From assembly GCA_037447605.1 (NCBI GenBank), contig CM074804.1:7913909-7977908 (forward strand): a stretch of 64,000 nt of DNA, written 5' to 3'. The notes under the pieces were generated by a model that had not been told where the DNA came from, did no database searches, and worked only from the letters and a program-made list of their open reading frames with translations. Below are positions 33,649-63,052 of this stretch, piece by piece. The stretch comes from Zygnema circumcarinatum SAG 698-1b (taxonomy: Eukaryota; Plantae; Zygnematophyceae). Every line of letters starts with the position of its first letter. Within the stretch, counting starts at the first letter, position 1. A program made the position numbers and the translations under genes.

Positions 33649-35817
33649 ATGGCTTCAAACGAAAAAGAGAAGTTCGAGAAGGAGTCTCCAAGTCACTTGG
33701 ATGGGACCGTGCTGGCTGATTGTAAGCCATTCAATATTGAGGTCGGCTTTTTCACTGTCCCCTAGCGTAATAAATTTTGCTCAACTTTCGCTTGTCGCAA
33801 GCCATTCATTACACTTTTTAAACAAAGAACCATGGATTTCTTATTCTTATGATGGATTTCAGTTGTTAGTGGCCTCGACTGTGACCTTCGTGCATAGACA
33901 AACACAGGTGAATTTTTCTGTGTATTACAGCTTACAAGTGCTTTCATCGTTTTGACCAAAACTCAGGATGAGCTGAAGAGATGCGGAGGTATCAACGTGC
34001 TTGTGCCTGGTCCTGAGGAGAAAAGCATCATTCGTCAACGTCTCGATGAAGGCCTTGAGTGCGCCTTCAATTGCGCGGCGAAGTAAGGGGATGGCGAACT
34101 ACTCCTACATACTTTGCGTGCTCCTTATTCCTTGTTTCAATCAGATTTTTCTTATCTGTAGGCGTTTTGATTTGCCTGATGGATAGTTTCGGTTACAGCG
34201 TGCATATGACTGCGATGTACGCGTTTCAAGGGCTTTCTCTCTTCTGCAAGAAGGACACGGTCGCCTTGCCCGGCCACGCCAAATACTTCCGCAATCGTTC
34301 TTCCGAGTATTTGAAGGACTTCAAGCGCATTAACTCTTTCACCGTACGCTCTACCTTTTCCTTTAAAGAAATATGTGACAGGCCACAACCACTCCAAAGG
34401 GAACTTATCTGAAGCTATATCAATGCTTCAAACCATTGATTCCTGCAAACTTAAGATAGACCCGGAATATCTTCCTGTTCAACTTGAACTGACCTTTTGT
34501 GTAAACTCCAGATTGCTCGCGGAGGGGAAGTTGATTTGCGAGAGATTCTTGCCCCTCCAATGCCAACTCTTTCTGAACGAGGAGAAAATGGTCTCACGGG
34601 TGATTCTTCTTCTTGTTCGCTGTGGTTAACTGGTTATTGAATATGCCTCGCTTCTTTTTGTTTGTTTGAAATGACCACTAATGCTGTTGAGAAATTCTTT
34701 CCATTGTCAATGAGTGAATGATTTTATAACCTTGGAAGCAGTGGTTGAAAAACTTCCCGTTCAAAAATTATCATCGGCGCAGCATAAGTTGTCAAATTCG
34801 TAGTAACCCTGTTTCGGTATTGTTATCTTCCCGAAGTCCGCTGCCGCGCTTTGACCCAGCTGACATGAACCTGTTCAATTTTTTTTTACAGTAATGGAAT
34901 TCTCGTTGAGTTTGAACAAGCTGGTATACGAGAAGCAGCTGCATCTTTTGCGGGTGAGCAGGCTCCTCGTTAAGTTGGTCGTAAACATTTTCTTCATAGA
35001 AAGTTAGTGGCTTTTTCCAGGCACTGTGAGAGCATTATGCCCGCAGATCTGACATAGCGGTTGCACATCATGATCGTCAGGCCGCAGAGAATGTGGGAGA
35101 TGGTGGTGCTGCACAGTTTGTGACTGAAAAGTTGATCAGGCCTATGGTGAGCCACAGGAAACTTCTGACTTTCTCTTCACCCTGCTTCTCGAAGTGCGTG
35201 CCTTTGAAAGATCAATGTATGAATGCTTGCATCGGTCGTTTCTTAATCCCGAGGACCTGGCCGGATTTTTCTCAAGGATGTCGAATGAATTCAAGTTGAT
35301 TCTTTCCAAAACCAACTTCTTATGCGAAGTGTTTGTTATTTTGGTGCTAATCCCTTAAGCGGTTTCTGCTCTTTCATTTCCATCTTGGCAATCAGGTGAA
35401 GAGGATAAAAAAGAAGGGCATGTATATTTCCATGCTCCGCCGCATGGGGAAGGGAGTTGGTGAGTCCCCGTCCATCCTCTGTTGTCTGTGCCTTTTACCT
35501 TTGCACAGTTACAGATCTCAGTGATGGATTTTGTTCTGGCTGCAGGGGAGTATACTTTCGACCAAAACCTGCTCCATGCTGGGGCTTCTGGAAAGCTCTC
35601 ATCGGAAGAGGTAAGATGAAACCGAGTTGACCATTTTTTGTTTTGAGCCGCATATGCCTGTATGTGCGGTACCGTACTCGCCTTTTTCATTCGTTTCATG
35701 GGTTCTTCACAGCTCTAAACTTCCCTAGGTTCTTCCTTGCTGTAGGAGGATGGCCTCGTTGGCCGCATGGGAAAGGCGTCCCTTGGATTCAAACATCACG
35801 CTCGCGGGGGGTTCTGA
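33649..35817 (+). CDS. Ferritin-like protein 1 (ferroxidase-dead, no transit peptide)
   Basis: Nine exons: 33649-33741, 33967-34082, 34199-34343, 34512-34599, 34892-34953, 35081-35146, 35396-35459, 35546-35610, 35746-35817. The ORF is intact. Motifs SIIRQR, VALPGHAKYFR, RGGEV, VMEFSLSLNKLVYEK, LRRMGKG and GEYTFDQNLL align colinearly with plant ferritin, with introns at the positions recalled for plant ferritins. Confidence 0.85.
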
Positions 35818-38640: not shown

Positions 38641-39179
38641 CGAGTATTGAATCCTGCACTGCTAGAAGTTCTCTTGGAGGAGTGACGAGGACCGCTGGTA
38701 CAAGTACAGAATTGGAAACTCACATTCAATGCATTCAGAAGAAGGAAGGATAGCCTTTACCTCTCGTTTTTCGCAAAGGCATGCACAGCCGGCTACAGTA
38801 AACCATTGGAAGTGGAGAATTGAAAGTGCATGGCAGTGCATGCCCTAAAGCCACATGCATGCCAAGGCGGCCCTATGGTTGCTCTCTCGCATGAGAATTT
38901 GCAGTATGTGTCACTTTCCCTCCTCTCCGGTTCCCTCGAGCCATGCAATTTATACGCGTGCTCTCACCAGCGACCTCCCGGCAGCATGTCATATTGGAGC
39001 TCCACATGGCGTCTTGCAGAAGCAGCCGCCACGTGGAATGGAGACAGATATTTTGCGGTGGTACAGGCAAAGGCCAGGGGACTGGAGGCTGACAGTAAGT
39101 GAATTTTTGTGAAGGTGGTGGCACCTACAGCTGGTAGTTTGCCGGCCAGCTCCGAAGGAACTAGTGATCGTTGGTGGCC

Positions 39180-41653
39180 ATGGCTCCCAAGGGGGCAGAG
39201 AAAGAGAGAGAGTCCTTGCAAAATAAGCTGGAAAGGGAGGCTCCAAAACACCTTGACGGAACAGTGTTACCTGATGAGAAATCTTTCGACCTGCAGGTAA
39301 CCTACGAAATCTAGATTTTAGAGATCATTTAAAGAATTCCTTACCGTGAGTATGCATAGCTACTTGTTTTACGCACAAGTCCATAGCGGGATTAGGAGTC
39401 TCAACGTGCCTCTTTTTTCCAACTTTGGTTAAGATCTATGTTTTGATAGGTGTGTGTTCCTCCCTGTTCATGAAACACTATCGACAAAGCGTTTTCAGCA
39501 AATGCGTTTGCACACCATGACTATTTGCCGCTTTCCGTTGATATTTTCTAAACATAAGAATTCAATCAATTGGAGTCACTCAATCGTATGATGTCGTCGT
39601 CTCAATCGTCGTCGTCTCATCTGCTTTTTTCTTGAACAATATTTTAGGCCGAGGGTAATTTGCTGTATTATTATTTACTGTATGATGAAGGTGAAAGTTG
39701 TGAATGTTATGATGAAGGTGAAAGTTGTGAATGTTTTGATGCAGGAGGAGCTAAAACGCCATGGCGGTATTGATACCCTCGTGCCAAGGCCCGGGGCTGA
39801 CAGTCTTGTTCGTCAGCGCTTGGATCTTGGCCTCGAGAAAGCGCTCAGTTGCGCAGCCCAGTAAGTGTTTCTCTCCTCCCCTTTCCATTTTTTTTCAAAT
39901 ATGTCTTGTTTGGCTGCTTTCAATATGCTTGATACATTTTCTGCACAGTTTTGACACATTTTTTACATAGTTTTGACTCGATTTGCGCGATTGTTGTTTT
40001 GCAGTGTGCACCTGACAGCATGGTATGCTTACGAAAGGCTCGTTTTGTTCTGCGGGACCGACATCGTCAGCTTGCCTGGCCACGCCAAATTCTTTCGCAA
40101 GCGCGCTTTCGAGTACCATGTGTCTTTCAATGAAATTGCTTGCTTTGCGGTACATTTGTCGTTGCCGTTTGCCTCTTTGAAGCGCATTTCTATTCAATCA
40201 ATTTTCACACTGTTTGTTTATTTTATAGAATATTCTTGAAGCGAATCACATGCATGTAAGATGACTTGTATCAATCTTTTTGTTTAGATTGATAGCTTGC
40301 TGTCATGCTTGCCGTTGCAGAGTGGGCGTGGTGGAGACATGAACCTGCGACCAATTCTCCCCCCCCCGGAGCTCAACGTTGATAAGGGCGGTGCTGGTTT
40401 GGCTGGTATTCTTTTTCCTACTATTCTTTTTCCTACTGTATTTTTGTTTGCGGAGTTTAGAGTAGTTTGATGCGGAGTTTAGAGTAATTTGATTCTTTCA
40501 ACAATGTGCTATCTAGCTAGGCCAAACCTTCAACGTACAGAACAAAAATGTATATATGTTTCAGGATTATGTCACCTACAAACCCTTTTCGCTCTGTTAT
40601 TGCAGCTATGGAGTTTTCGTTGGCCACTTGCAAGGTGATTCCTTCACTCTTGCTTCCGTTTTTCTTCTCCAATAGACTCTTGTTATTTTCGTTCAAAATG
40701 TCAATTCCACTCTGAAAGTTGCCGAACGATTTTTTTGAAACAAGGTTTTAAGTAGCACTATTTTTTTCTTTTTCTAAATTTGCTGCCTCACTTTCTGAAT
40801 GGATGCAGCTCGTCTATGAGAAGCAGCTTCAGCTATACAAGGTAGGCAAGACTTCAGCCATGGCTTTAGAACAGAAAAATCTGCAACATTCTTTTGGCCG
40901 AGCTTGTGACATTTCAATCGTATATTCTTTGTATTATTTTTAAGATGAAACCATTCAGACGCTCCTTCTTGTGCATGCGTTGGTGAGCAGGCTGCAGAAA
41001 TAGCAGGCGATGGGGGGGCCATGTACTTTGTCACCGATTCCCTGATATCTCCCATGGTATGTATGGTGGCTTTGACTTACAGCGTTGCAAAAAAGGTCAA
41101 GTAATGAATCATTCTGGATGTTTGTCTATTCGTGCTTAATATAGATAGGACTTGAAAGGTTCATTTCTCCATTAACCGAGAGATTAACTTATGCTTGGAT
41201 TCTTGGTTGTGCGCAGGTGGAATCCATTAAACAGACCGCCGGTTACATCACCACTCTACGACGCATGGGACCTGGACTGGGTAAGCAGTAGCATACGTAG
41301 TAGAATTGTGTTTCGGCTTTTGCTTTTGACATGGATTGGTTGGGAACTGTGCTTTGACCTTCGTGTTGCTTTACAGGAGAATACATGTTTGACCAACATC
41401 TGTTGCTTGGAGTTGACCCCCGGGCTCTCTTAGCCGGTCTGGTAAAGCCTAAAAGCCCTTTTTTTCTCTTGAAAAGTGTTGAAGCTGACATACAGAATTA
41501 TATTGCTGTTGCTTGGTACCACCCTCCCTTACTTTCTTTCCGCTTGTTTTTTCCATTTCTTTCTTTCCTATTGGCCCAAATTTGCAGTCGCAAAGCTCTA
41601 CTGTGGAGCCCCCCTCGAAGAAAGCGCGCGTGGCAACATCAACCAACATTTAG
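39180..41653 (+). CDS. Ferritin-like protein 2 (ferroxidase-dead, no transit peptide, C-terminal NLS-like motif)
   Basis: Ten exons: 39180-39296, 39745-39860, 40005-40149, 40321-40405, 40606-40634, 40809-40841, 40991-41056, 41217-41280, 41377-41441, 41588-41653. Motifs SLVRQR, VSLPGHAKFFR, RGGDM, AMEFSLA, VESIKQ...LRRMG and GEYMFDQHLL. It ends ...VEPPSKKARVATSTNI*. Confidence 0.85.
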
Positions 41654-43351
41654 AGGTTGCGCAGATGTGCCCTCCCTCATCCCTCTTTGTAGGCTTTGGG
41701 TGCAATTGGGGCGGCTGCAATAGGGTTGGGAGCTCGGAACAAAGAAGAAAAGCGGGGCATATCAAGGGAGTGGTTTTAAAAACTCTTGTAAGAAGTGTTG
41801 GAAGGACACATTAAAAGAAGTCTTGGAAGGACACGGAAATGACGATGTGGGCGAGTGAAATGAGAGAGAGAGAGAGAGAAAGAGAGTCTGCCTGCATGCT
41901 TACGGATGGTGTCGTGAGGTGGAACCAACTGGGATGATGATCCTTTGGAAAAAGAAAAAACGTTTGATTTGTTTTGCGAGCGCTTATGGTATGCTTTGAA
42001 GTGGCGGTGCGTTTTTGTAGAAGCTCCTTGCGTAGATGGGCGTGCACATGGGCCCAAGTCCAGAGCTTGCTTTCCCCGCTTCAACCTTCTCTCTCTCTCT
42101 CTGTCCATGGCACCATTGCCGTGCCCTCCCTCCCTCTCTTCGAGTCCGTTAGTTCCAGTCCCTTCCTCCCTCCTGCCTGCCTGCTTGCTTGCTTGCCTGT
42201 TCCTCTCTCTCTCTCTCTCTGCTCCCGACCCCATTTTCCCCCCCTTCAGTCTTCGGGCTCTTCCCCCTCGAATGTGGTGACGTCAAAGGTTGAAACTTGC
42301 ATGCGTCATTACCCTGGAGGGTTCGCAATTTCATGACGCAGATACCCACAACCCCATGAAAATGCCAATTGGACAGTTTTGATGCTACAGCCAGACCGTA
42401 GCAGTCTGTCGTGGCTGCTGTAGCACATTTTGTAGCCCATTTTGGACTGCTGAATAGTGACGTAGATGACGTCACCAAGTTGGAATTGCAATGTGACGTC
42501 ATAAAGTTGCAGTCGTTTCTATTTTGTGATATCATCAGGCTGGAATCTTTTTTGTCATGGATGCGGACAGGTTTACGGGTTCGATTCAAAAAATTGCATT
42601 TCAGAGCCTCCCAAGTTCCAACGGGTGGCTCGAATTGCCCGCAGCCCCCCCCCTTCCCCTCCAGCCCGCAAATCACCATTTTTCGGTTCGATTCCAGTTC
42701 AAAAAACTTCTTTTTTCAAACTCGGTTTTTAAACAGCAAACTGCCAGTTGTCGCACACTCATTGGGCTTGATCACCCAATACCACCGAAGTATTTGGAAA
42801 AAAATATTTTTAGCTATATTAATTAATTAATTAATTATTTATTTTAGGAACGACAATCATCCAAAGCTTACTTTTTTTTTCAAATTTCATGTCCAAGTTC
42901 CACTTGATCTGAGTTTTGGCCAGAAAAAAATATTATTTTCTCTTGCAATGTTCAAGTTCAACCAACCAAAAATCGAGAAATTCAAAGCTACCCGCACGCG
43001 CCTGTTTCGCTATACCCCATTTTAGTGTTCGATCCTCCTGTCTCTATTTTCCCGCAACCCGCCGGTTGAGCCCCACCCTCCAGCTGGCGTGCGCCCATTG
43101 GTCTGCGCCCAGGTCGCCCGCCAATGTTTGCGCGTCACGTGGCGCCCGCCCGGAGCGCTTTCCGCCCTCCGCCCGTCGCAGGCCCTCACAAAGCCTCATC
43201 ACGCCACGTCAGGTCTTGGAAACCCATCCTTATTTGGCAGGAGGGAGAGGGAGAGGGAGAGAGAGGGAGAGAGGGAGAGTGGGAGAGGGAGAGGGAGAGG
43301 CCGGCAAGAAAGGGAGAGAGGGAAGTAGAGGAGGAAAGAGAAGGGAGGGAA

Positions 43352-61741: not shown

Positions 61742-63052
61742 TCAAATAACATAATTCGACCATTCTTTTAAGAACGATGTGTGGTCCATCGTCTTGCTCG
61801 GAGTCTCCTCCAAGTGCTTGGGATTGCTCTTCCCTCCCACCAGCTTAGCGGGATTGCCTACCACGGTCGTGTGAGGGGGAACATCTCCCAACACAACCGA
61901 ACCTGCTCCAATCTTCGCGCCTTCACCAATGACAATATTTCCCAGCAGCGTTGCCCCTGCACCGATTAAGACCCCGTCCTCAACCTTGGGATGCCTGTTG
62001 CCTGCAACGGAACCGGTTCCGCCCAATGTGACATGATGCAGAATCGAAACGTTGTTGCCGATCTCTGCCGTTTCACCCACAACCAGTCCTGTAGCATGGT
62101 CCAGCATCAAGCCGCATCCAAGTTTGGCCGCAGGATGAATGTCGACATGAAACACCTCCGAGACGCGGCTCTGCAATGCGAGAGCCAAAGGTTCCCTGCC
62201 CTGTCCCCATAGTCGGTGAGCTATCCTGTGAGCCTGGCAGGCAAGGTATCCCTTATAGTTGAGTAGGCACTGTGAAAATGTTTCGCATGCAGGGTCTCTC
62301 TCCTTCACTGCCATTAAATCTGCCCTAAAGGCTTCCCGCACGTCCTTATCGTCCATGAAAGTGTCTGCAATCAGTGAAAATAGCTGTGAACTCAGCATTG
62401 TATCGCTGCTAAGCTTGTTCGCGAGGTGGAATGCAAGGCATCGTTCCAATGATCGGTGCGACAAGACGGTGGAGTAGAGGTAGCTAGCAAGAGCAGGCTC
62501 CGCCTCGGCGTCTCTCCTCGCCTCCGCTCGAATTGCAAGCCACAAATCATCAACTTGTATGCGGCCACTTGTCGAGCATCCCGCATGATCCGCTGCTCTG
62601 CTTTCTACAGCTATTGCCTCATTACTGCTCTCTGTACCAGAGATATTTAAACCAGAATCAGAATCCTTGCCATTGACATTCCCTCCTGCGCTCGTTGCTC
62701 CGCCTGCAAAGTCTCCTCTCCCTGCTGCCGCAGCACTGCTATGCTCTCCAGCATTCCATGGCTGGCTGCTTCCCTCCGTTAACTTGTTAGCTTCAATCAG
62801 AACGGCACTCACCAACGCCTGCTGCTTCCCAGAAGCAGAAACCTTCTCTGAACCGCCTGCACAAAAACTCCCCCTCTCCCTCTTCCTCTGCGCGTCCTCT
62901 GCAAGGCGCAGGCCCGTCCATCCACGGAGTCGAGAGTCGCTGCAAGGTACGTGAGCAGGAGAAAGGGAGGAGAGTGATTCTCGAGGAGCAAGGACAGGGA
63001 GCCCCGCGACAAGAGCCAGCTTGCTGGAAGCAGAAAAAGCCGCCATGACCAT
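61742..63052 (-). CDS. SERAT: Serine O-acetyltransferase with an organellar transit peptide, intronless
   Basis: First ATG at 63052. Motifs EPALASYLYSTVL, DPAC, YKGYLACQAHR, DIHPAA, DHATG, GVTLGGTG-type, RHPK and hexapeptide repeats, ending MDHTSFLKEWSNYVI. Confidence 0.96.
   Translation of the reverse strand: MVMAAFSASSKLALVAGLPVLAPRESLSSLSPAHVPCSDSRLRGWTGLRLAEDAQRKRERGSFCAGGSEKVSASGKQQALVSAVLIEANKLTEGSSQPWNAGEHSSAAAAGRGDFAGGATSAGGNVNGKDSDSGLNISGTESSNEAIAVESRAADHAGCSTSGRIQVDDLWLAIRAEARRDAEAEPALASYLYSTVLSHRSLERCLAFHLANKLSSDTMLSSQLFSLIADTFMDDKDVREAFRADLMAVKERDPACETFSQCLLNYKGYLACQAHRIAHRLWGQGREPLALALQSRVSEVFHVDIHPAAKLGCGLMLDHATGLVVGETAEIGNNVSILHHVTLGGTGSVAGNRHPKVEDGVLIGAGATLLGNIVIGEGAKIGAGSVVLGDVPPHTTVVGNPAKLVGGKSNPKHLEETPSKTMDHTSFLKEWSNYVI

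Follow-up and report, generated by a model that had tools for sequence, protein, structure and literature searches.

A conserved terminal exon encoding a candidate nuclear import motif in a ferritin-like subfamily of streptophyte algae

We analyzed two ferritin-like genes in a 64,000-nucleotide (nt) stretch of the genome of the zygnematophyte alga Zygnema circumcarinatum SAG 698-1b (GenBank assembly GCA_037447605.1, contig CM074804.1, positions 7,913,909 to 7,977,908 of the forward strand). The whole stretch is referred to below as the window, and positions are counted from its first letter. The genes are intron-rich and lie in tandem on the + strand, paralogue 1 at 33649-35817 and paralogue 2 at 39180-41653, and under their exon models the open frames are 256 and 261 residues long, respectively. 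The element in question is the terminal exon of paralogue 2, which follows the exon for helix E and encodes a basic motif, PPSKKARV, that may act as a nuclear import signal.

The exon borders of paralogue 2 are supported by joints in assembled contigs, written here as the last position of one exon and the first of the next. Five sequencing runs of one organism contain the stretch, and the contigs of four were compared over 38650-42400. Spliced contigs came from runs X2, X3 and X5, which are three samples of a single study and carry no RNA label. The features of paralogue 2 are as follows.

39180..39296, + strand: coding part of exon 1, from the ATG at 39180 (joint 39296/39745 in X2 and X5; frame check)
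39745..39860, + strand: exon 2, 116 nt (joints 39296/39745 and 39860/40005; same length in paralogue 1 and Closterium)
40005..40149, + strand: exon 3, 145 nt, coding for the end of helix A to helix B (contig joints)
40321..40405, + strand: exon 4, 85 nt (joint 40149/40321 in X2, X3 and X5; joint 40405/40606 in X2 and X5)
40606..40634, + strand: exon 5a, 29 nt (joints 40405/40606 and 40634/40809)
40809..40841, + strand: exon 5b, 33 nt (joints 40634/40809 and 40841/40991)
40991..41056, + strand: exon 6, 66 nt (joints 40841/40991 and 41056/41217)
41217..41280, + strand: exon 7, 64 nt (joints 41056/41217 and 41280/41377)
41377..41441, + strand: exon 8, 65 nt, helix E (EYMFDQHLL) and the start of the tail (contig joints; 65 nt also in paralogue 1 and Closterium)
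41442..41587, + strand: terminal intron, 146 nt, GT..AG, phase 0 (skipped in X2, X3 and X5; unspliced in X1, X2 and X3)
41588..41653, + strand: coding part of the terminal exon, 21 codons (41588-41650) and TAG (41651-41653) (aligns with Closterium locus L001:8356-8394)
41609..41632, + strand: the motif PPSKKARV, with its core K-K-A-R at 41618-41629
41654..42155, + strand: at least this part of the terminal exon is 3' untranslated (contigs of X2, X3 and X5 span 41587-42155 and end at a CT repeat)

The joint 41441/41588, with GT..AG borders and 146 nt skipped, was found in contigs of X2, X3 and X5. The eight other introns of paralogue 2 were also joined in these runs (39296/39745, 39860/40005, 40149/40321, 40405/40606, 40634/40809, 40841/40991, 41056/41217 and 41280/41377). 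In X5, an 812-nt contig was placed at 40989-41055 and 41587-42155, and its intervening junctions were taken from the table of joints. The nine GT..AG joints indicate that the runs contain spliced transcripts, and together they place the C-terminal end of the spliced paralogue 2 protein at ...VEPPSKKARVATSTNI*. A strong pyrimidine tract lies ahead of the acceptor of the terminal intron. The terminal exon of paralogue 2 is real and spliced, and the junction predicted by the first-pass annotation is thus present in the contigs, alongside unspliced ones.

Unspliced contigs cover the terminal intron at 41412-41616 in X2 and X3 and at 41217-41828 in X1, and could represent retained-intron RNA, pre-mRNA or DNA. 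They raise the question of whether the spliced tail is a minor product, with the main product keeping the last intron or the transcript remaining mostly unprocessed. The unspliced contigs of X2 and X3 have word depths similar to those of the spliced contigs, the X1 contig is also consistent with such a situation, and the frame stays open through the last intron, giving a 333-residue product. However, because most other introns also have unspliced contigs, the signal looks like general carry-over of pre-mRNA or DNA. In addition, depth over the terminal intron in X5 is far below that of the flanking exons, a homologous terminal exon is used by annotated proteins of Closterium and Klebsormidium, and the peptide that the retained intron would encode is hydrophobic and not conserved. 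We consider it very unlikely that the spliced form is the minor one.

Three further observations concern this transcript region. With the last intron retained, the frame would be open across all 146 nt and continue in another frame of the terminal exon to a stop near 41722; within this frame (41442-41725), a purine-rich stretch reads PPRRKRAW, another basic cluster that is probably a coincidence. High-depth contigs in all four runs stop or diverge at 38696 (38650-38738), which may be due to a repeat or to a distinct transcript. The segment 40229-40255, 27 nt long, open and bordered by AG and GT, was considered as a micro-exon of paralogue 2 and ruled out, as it is skipped in all RNA contigs (joint 40149/40321).

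For paralogue 1, the exons were modeled from sequence.

33649..35817, + strand: paralogue 1, nine-exon model (open frame; exon lengths equal to those of Closterium)
33649-33741, 33967-34082, 34199-34343, 34512-34599 and 34892-34953, + strand: model exons 1-5
35081-35146, 35396-35459, 35546-35610 and 35746-35817, + strand: model exons 6-9
35746..35817, + strand: predicted terminal exon, without K(K/R)x(K/R) in the translation of the model

The exon lengths of this model are 93, 116, 145, 88, 62, 66, 64, 65 and 72 nt, and those of Closterium L001 are 132, 116, 145, 88, 62, 66, 64, 65 and 108 nt. Paralogue 2 departs from the shared pattern only by its 85-nt fourth exon and by an extra intron that divides the 62-nt exon into 29 and 33 nt. 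The predicted junction 35610/35746 of paralogue 1 is based on four features: the 65-nt exon is identical, the donor is GT, a pyrimidine tract accompanies the AG acceptor, and Closterium has the same structure. Without splicing here, the paralogue 1 protein would stop two codons past 35610.

We then assessed the family to which these genes belong. Database searches used single window exons and orthologue proteins; the joined window translations served for alignment, the tree and local tblastn runs. From exon 3 of both window genes (48 residues), a profile was built that matched residues 24-59 of eukaryotic ferritin chains in the PDB (E=3e-6). Pfam searches with single window exons found no match, the pieces being too short, and an ESM Atlas search with the 48-residue exon returned nothing usable. 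Searched against a library of 1.84 billion proteins, the profile retrieved a partial Closterium protein (P0001) and a full-length protein of Klebsormidium nitens (P0004), which is annotated as 'hypothetical' and listed as 'Ferritin' in UniRef. Later searches added two full-length annotated Closterium proteins, P0010 and P0012. These two proteins and P0004 pass the cut-off of the Pfam family PF00210 (41.6-44 bits against 24.5; P0010 at 1.5e-10), and the best solved relative of P0010 is soybean chloroplast ferritin 3a68 (E=8e-32, residues 56-234).

The fold was examined in an AlphaFold2 (AF2) model of the Closterium orthologue P0010, built from a seven-sequence alignment; the test therefore concerns an orthologue and not a window protein. 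The model has helices A-E at 72-99, 107-133, 157-186, 189-220 and 224-235, with predicted local distance difference test (pLDDT) values of 70-91, and Foldseek comparison with plant ferritins gave target-normalised TM-scores of 0.84-0.95. The 42 residues that follow helix E (240-281) have pLDDT values below 50 and no secondary structure in this monomer model.

In our local alignment, the ferroxidase-centre positions (Glu27, Glu62, His65, Glu107 and Gln141 in human H numbering) are kept in the canonical ferritins P0008, P0005 and P0014. The window genes have His, Tyr, Ser or Asp, Cys or Asn, and Met in these columns, and the Closterium and Klebsormidium proteins are substituted at most of them. 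By sequence and predicted fold, the proteins are members of the ferritin family, and they are predicted not to be catalytic ferritins. Both window genes and Closterium have Lys/Glu-rich N-termini, which on inspection are not transit-peptide-like; the leader of canonical P0008 is rich in Ser, Thr, Ala and Arg. The N-terminal extension of about 55-70 residues (39180-39860; 33649-34082; L001:6001-6388) contains blocks common to the window alga and Closterium, GTV.PD..SF followed by E.K..GG...L.P, and part of it aligns with the region ahead of helix A in soybean ferritin.

In a maximum-likelihood tree, the window genes, Closterium and Klebsormidium formed one clade apart from three canonical ferritins (100/99), and the two window genes were sisters (99/98). 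All relatives found were from streptophyte algae. As judged from these comparisons, the subfamily arose from plant-type ferritin and forms a clade of its own.

The gene structures bear on the age of the terminal exon. In Closterium, a phase-0 intron separates the 65-nt helix-E exon from a terminal exon (L001:8320-8427), which is used by both P0010 and P0012 and codes for QPPTKRARTAA. In K. nitens (L003), the phase-0 terminal intron is shifted downstream by two codons, and L003:6503-6571 forms the terminal exon. As the structure is the same in Closterium and similar in Klebsormidium, the extra intron and exon predate the split of the algal classes. The terminal exon is, on this comparative evidence, ancestral to the streptophyte-alga ferritin-like subfamily and not new to the gene pair. 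The first-pass annotation had described an extra intron and a novel terminal exon in both paralogues; the junction of paralogue 2 holds in the contigs, but the exon is not a novelty, being present in Closterium and Klebsormidium.

P0012 and P0010 use different acceptors for the terminal exon, one beginning 14 codons earlier and the other exactly at QPPTKRAR, with the motif in both. An environmental contig (L005, ENA ERZ19031371, 2317 nt) carries exons 1-7 of a zygnematophyte-type orthologue with 48-79% identity to Closterium, depending on the exon, and ends short of the terminal exon. A pattern search of metagenome contigs for related loci gave 466 pattern matches and no relatives. At least 120 stretches matched a degenerate DNA pattern of the subfamily-specific AAE..GD.G.Q.F exon, and none of the 117 screened locally encodes a relative; three contigs labelled human gut metagenome were left out of this screen.

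We next compared the tails around the motif in four lineages.

Window paralogue 2: VEPPSKKARVATS
Closterium: MQPPTKRARTAAN
K. nitens: GSGACKRAKSGVA (...GACKRAKSG)
L004, a Klebsormidium-like JGI metagenome contig: VSGAHKRHKPSAE (...GAHKRHKPS)

All four fit K(K/R)x(K/R), with the cores KKAR in paralogue 2, KRAR in Closterium, KRAK in K. nitens and KRHK in L004. The rest of the tail does not align between the paralogue 2/Closterium group and the Klebsormidium/L004 group, and Pro-Pro two residues upstream of the core is present in the former pair and absent from the Klebsormidium-type tails. From this alignment, the core is the sole part of the tail kept across lineages and is ancestral to the subfamily. 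The fit of the paralogue 2 tail to the consensus, as claimed in the first-pass annotation, was confirmed, as was the absence of such a motif from the predicted paralogue 1 tail, and the motif proved to be conserved in orthologues from Closterium and Klebsormidium.

Such a short motif could be a functionless chance feature of a tail under low constraint. The tails are otherwise poorly conserved, their terminal-exon part varies between 21 and 35 residues, and paralogue 1 does without the motif. However, the motif is found in four lineages across algal classes, and shuffling each tail produced it in only 0.5-0.9% of cases (0.9% for the 21-residue tail of paralogue 2). Furthermore, the local alignment score of the paralogue 2 and Closterium tails (39) was not reached in any of 5000 shuffles; for the Klebsormidium and L004 tails, the alignment gave p=0.0008. 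A chance origin is therefore improbable in our view.

Downstream of paralogue 1, up to 37400, we found no alternative exon with a homologous motif. As the window genes are sisters and the outgroups carry the motif, the sequences suggest that loss in paralogue 1, rather than gain in paralogue 2, is the most likely course. Within helix D of paralogue 1 (35396-35459), KRIKKK also fits K(K/R)x(K/R); as it lies inside the folded bundle, it is unlikely to serve as a linear import signal.

At its major site, importin-alpha prefers K(K/R)x(K/R) in positions P2-P5, the Lys at P2 being invariant, and such a core 'may be sufficient' for binding (PMC3946659). The algal cores fit this consensus, the tail after helix E is disordered in the Closterium model and thus suits a linear motif, and the proteins have no plastid leader. 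For these reasons, the best reading is that the motif may be a classical nuclear import signal on a non-catalytic ferritin-like subunit, although we put this at about an even chance. Importin-alpha would bind the basic core of the tail, and nuclear import of the subunit, or of small oligomers, would precede or replace closure into a cage. A lineage-specific tandem duplication would then have been followed by loss of the motif from paralogue 1. Importin binding, nuclear location and any nuclear role are what we infer from these features.

Several points weigh against an import signal. Three basic residues make a weak signal alone, K(K/R)x(K/R) is common in proteomes, and many non-nuclear proteins carry it. 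The C-termini of canonical 24-mer ferritins point into the cavity, which would hide the motif, and a 29-kDa monomer could diffuse into the nucleus. The orthologues found represent only four lineages from two algal classes. At the RNA level, the evidence consists of contigs from one study, which give no proportions of spliced and unspliced forms, and the unspliced contigs described above exist alongside the spliced ones. Finally, a Ser or Thr follows one to three residues after the core in all four lineages (KKARVAT, KRART, KRAKS and KRHKPS), and a basophilic kinase site would fit as well.

This last point leads to a further explanation, in which the conserved core serves as a short linear motif for some other function: a basophilic kinase site, a site where nucleic acid or an acidic partner docks, or a patch on the lumen side that binds phosphate or anionic cargo inside a cage. 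The nearby Ser/Thr residues agree with the first of these, and the cavity-facing C-terminus of canonical ferritins, which is well established, fits such roles. So does the subfamily-wide replacement of the ferroxidase residues, from which it follows that the protein has probably changed function. However, a phosphorylation site and an import signal can coexist, and the Pro-Pro ahead of the core in paralogue 2 and Closterium resembles c-Myc-type signals. Moreover, all cores begin with Lys and have the precise K-(K/R)-x-(K/R) spacing that the importin-alpha major site requires (PMC3946659). Another job for the core is thus possible, and we consider it less probable than nuclear import.

If the motif is an import signal, a wider scenario can be drawn, which we offer tentatively and regard as unlikely. 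Streptophyte algae would keep a dedicated nuclear ferritin-like protein, catalytically dead and derived from plant ferritin, that bears a C-terminal import signal and acts in the nucleus alone or as the carrier of a partner. The partner would be paralogue 1 or a canonical ferritin, and iron might, for example, be sequestered near DNA under high light, ultraviolet (UV) radiation or desiccation.

In green plants and algae, ferritins are regarded as stores of iron in the plastid. In the searchable literature, we found no description of this subfamily and no account of an algal ferritin-like protein that is nuclear or located outside the plastid. Without a plastid leader or a ferroxidase centre, and with a conserved import-type motif, the subfamily suggests that the algal relatives of land plants put the ferritin fold to another use, which may be nuclear. 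A tandem pair with and without the motif, and transformable relatives such as Closterium, make the question directly testable. Even if the motif is not an import signal, the conserved terminal exon is now correctly annotated and a subfamily defined whose members are listed in databases as 'unnamed' or 'hypothetical'.

Two other features of the window lie outside the gene pair. Downstream of the CT-repeat-rich 3' end of paralogue 2, a cluster of TGACGT/ACGTCA elements of the cAMP-responsive element (CRE) or ACGT-core type at 42270-42500 may belong to the promoter of the next gene. At 61745-63052 (- strand), there is an intronless serine acetyltransferase gene, with SATase_N, hexapeptide repeats and an N-terminal leader of about 170 residues.

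Among known systems, the solved structure nearest to the subfamily in both sequence and fold is that of plant-type ferritin (phytoferritin; soybean SFER4, PDB 3a68). Both have a four-helix bundle with helix E and an RRxGxG loop preceding helix E. In contrast to plant-type ferritin, the subfamily has no transit-peptide-like N-terminus, its ferroxidase-centre residues are replaced, and a disordered tail of about 35-45 residues with the basic motif follows helix E, encoded partly by the additional terminal exon.

As a signal, the motif can be compared with the c-Myc-type monopartite nuclear localisation signal (PAAKRVKLD). Upstream Pro, Lys at P2, basic residues at P3 and P5, and a neutral P4 are shared, the upstream Pro being the Pro-Pro of paralogue 2 and Closterium. 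Unlike the c-Myc-type signal, the algal tails have only three basic residues, and the Klebsormidium-type tails are without the upstream Pro-Pro.

The first-pass annotation had drawn a parallel with avian ferritoid. The import signal of ferritoid is of the simian virus 40 (SV40) type. Ferritoid carries ferritin into the nuclei of the corneal epithelium (PMC10052036). Both ferritoid and the algal proteins are ferritin-like and have a basic import motif of the classical type; this likeness is one of concept only. A ferritoid-like carrier role, co-import of paralogue 1 and UV protection are conjecture, and no ferritin of this alga that could be the partner was identified in the window. In contrast to ferritoid, the algal proteins group with plant-type ferritins, and because these are their closest relatives, any likeness would be convergent. 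If the wider scenario is true, the lineage from which land plants arose would have its own counterpart of avian ferritoid, reached by convergence.

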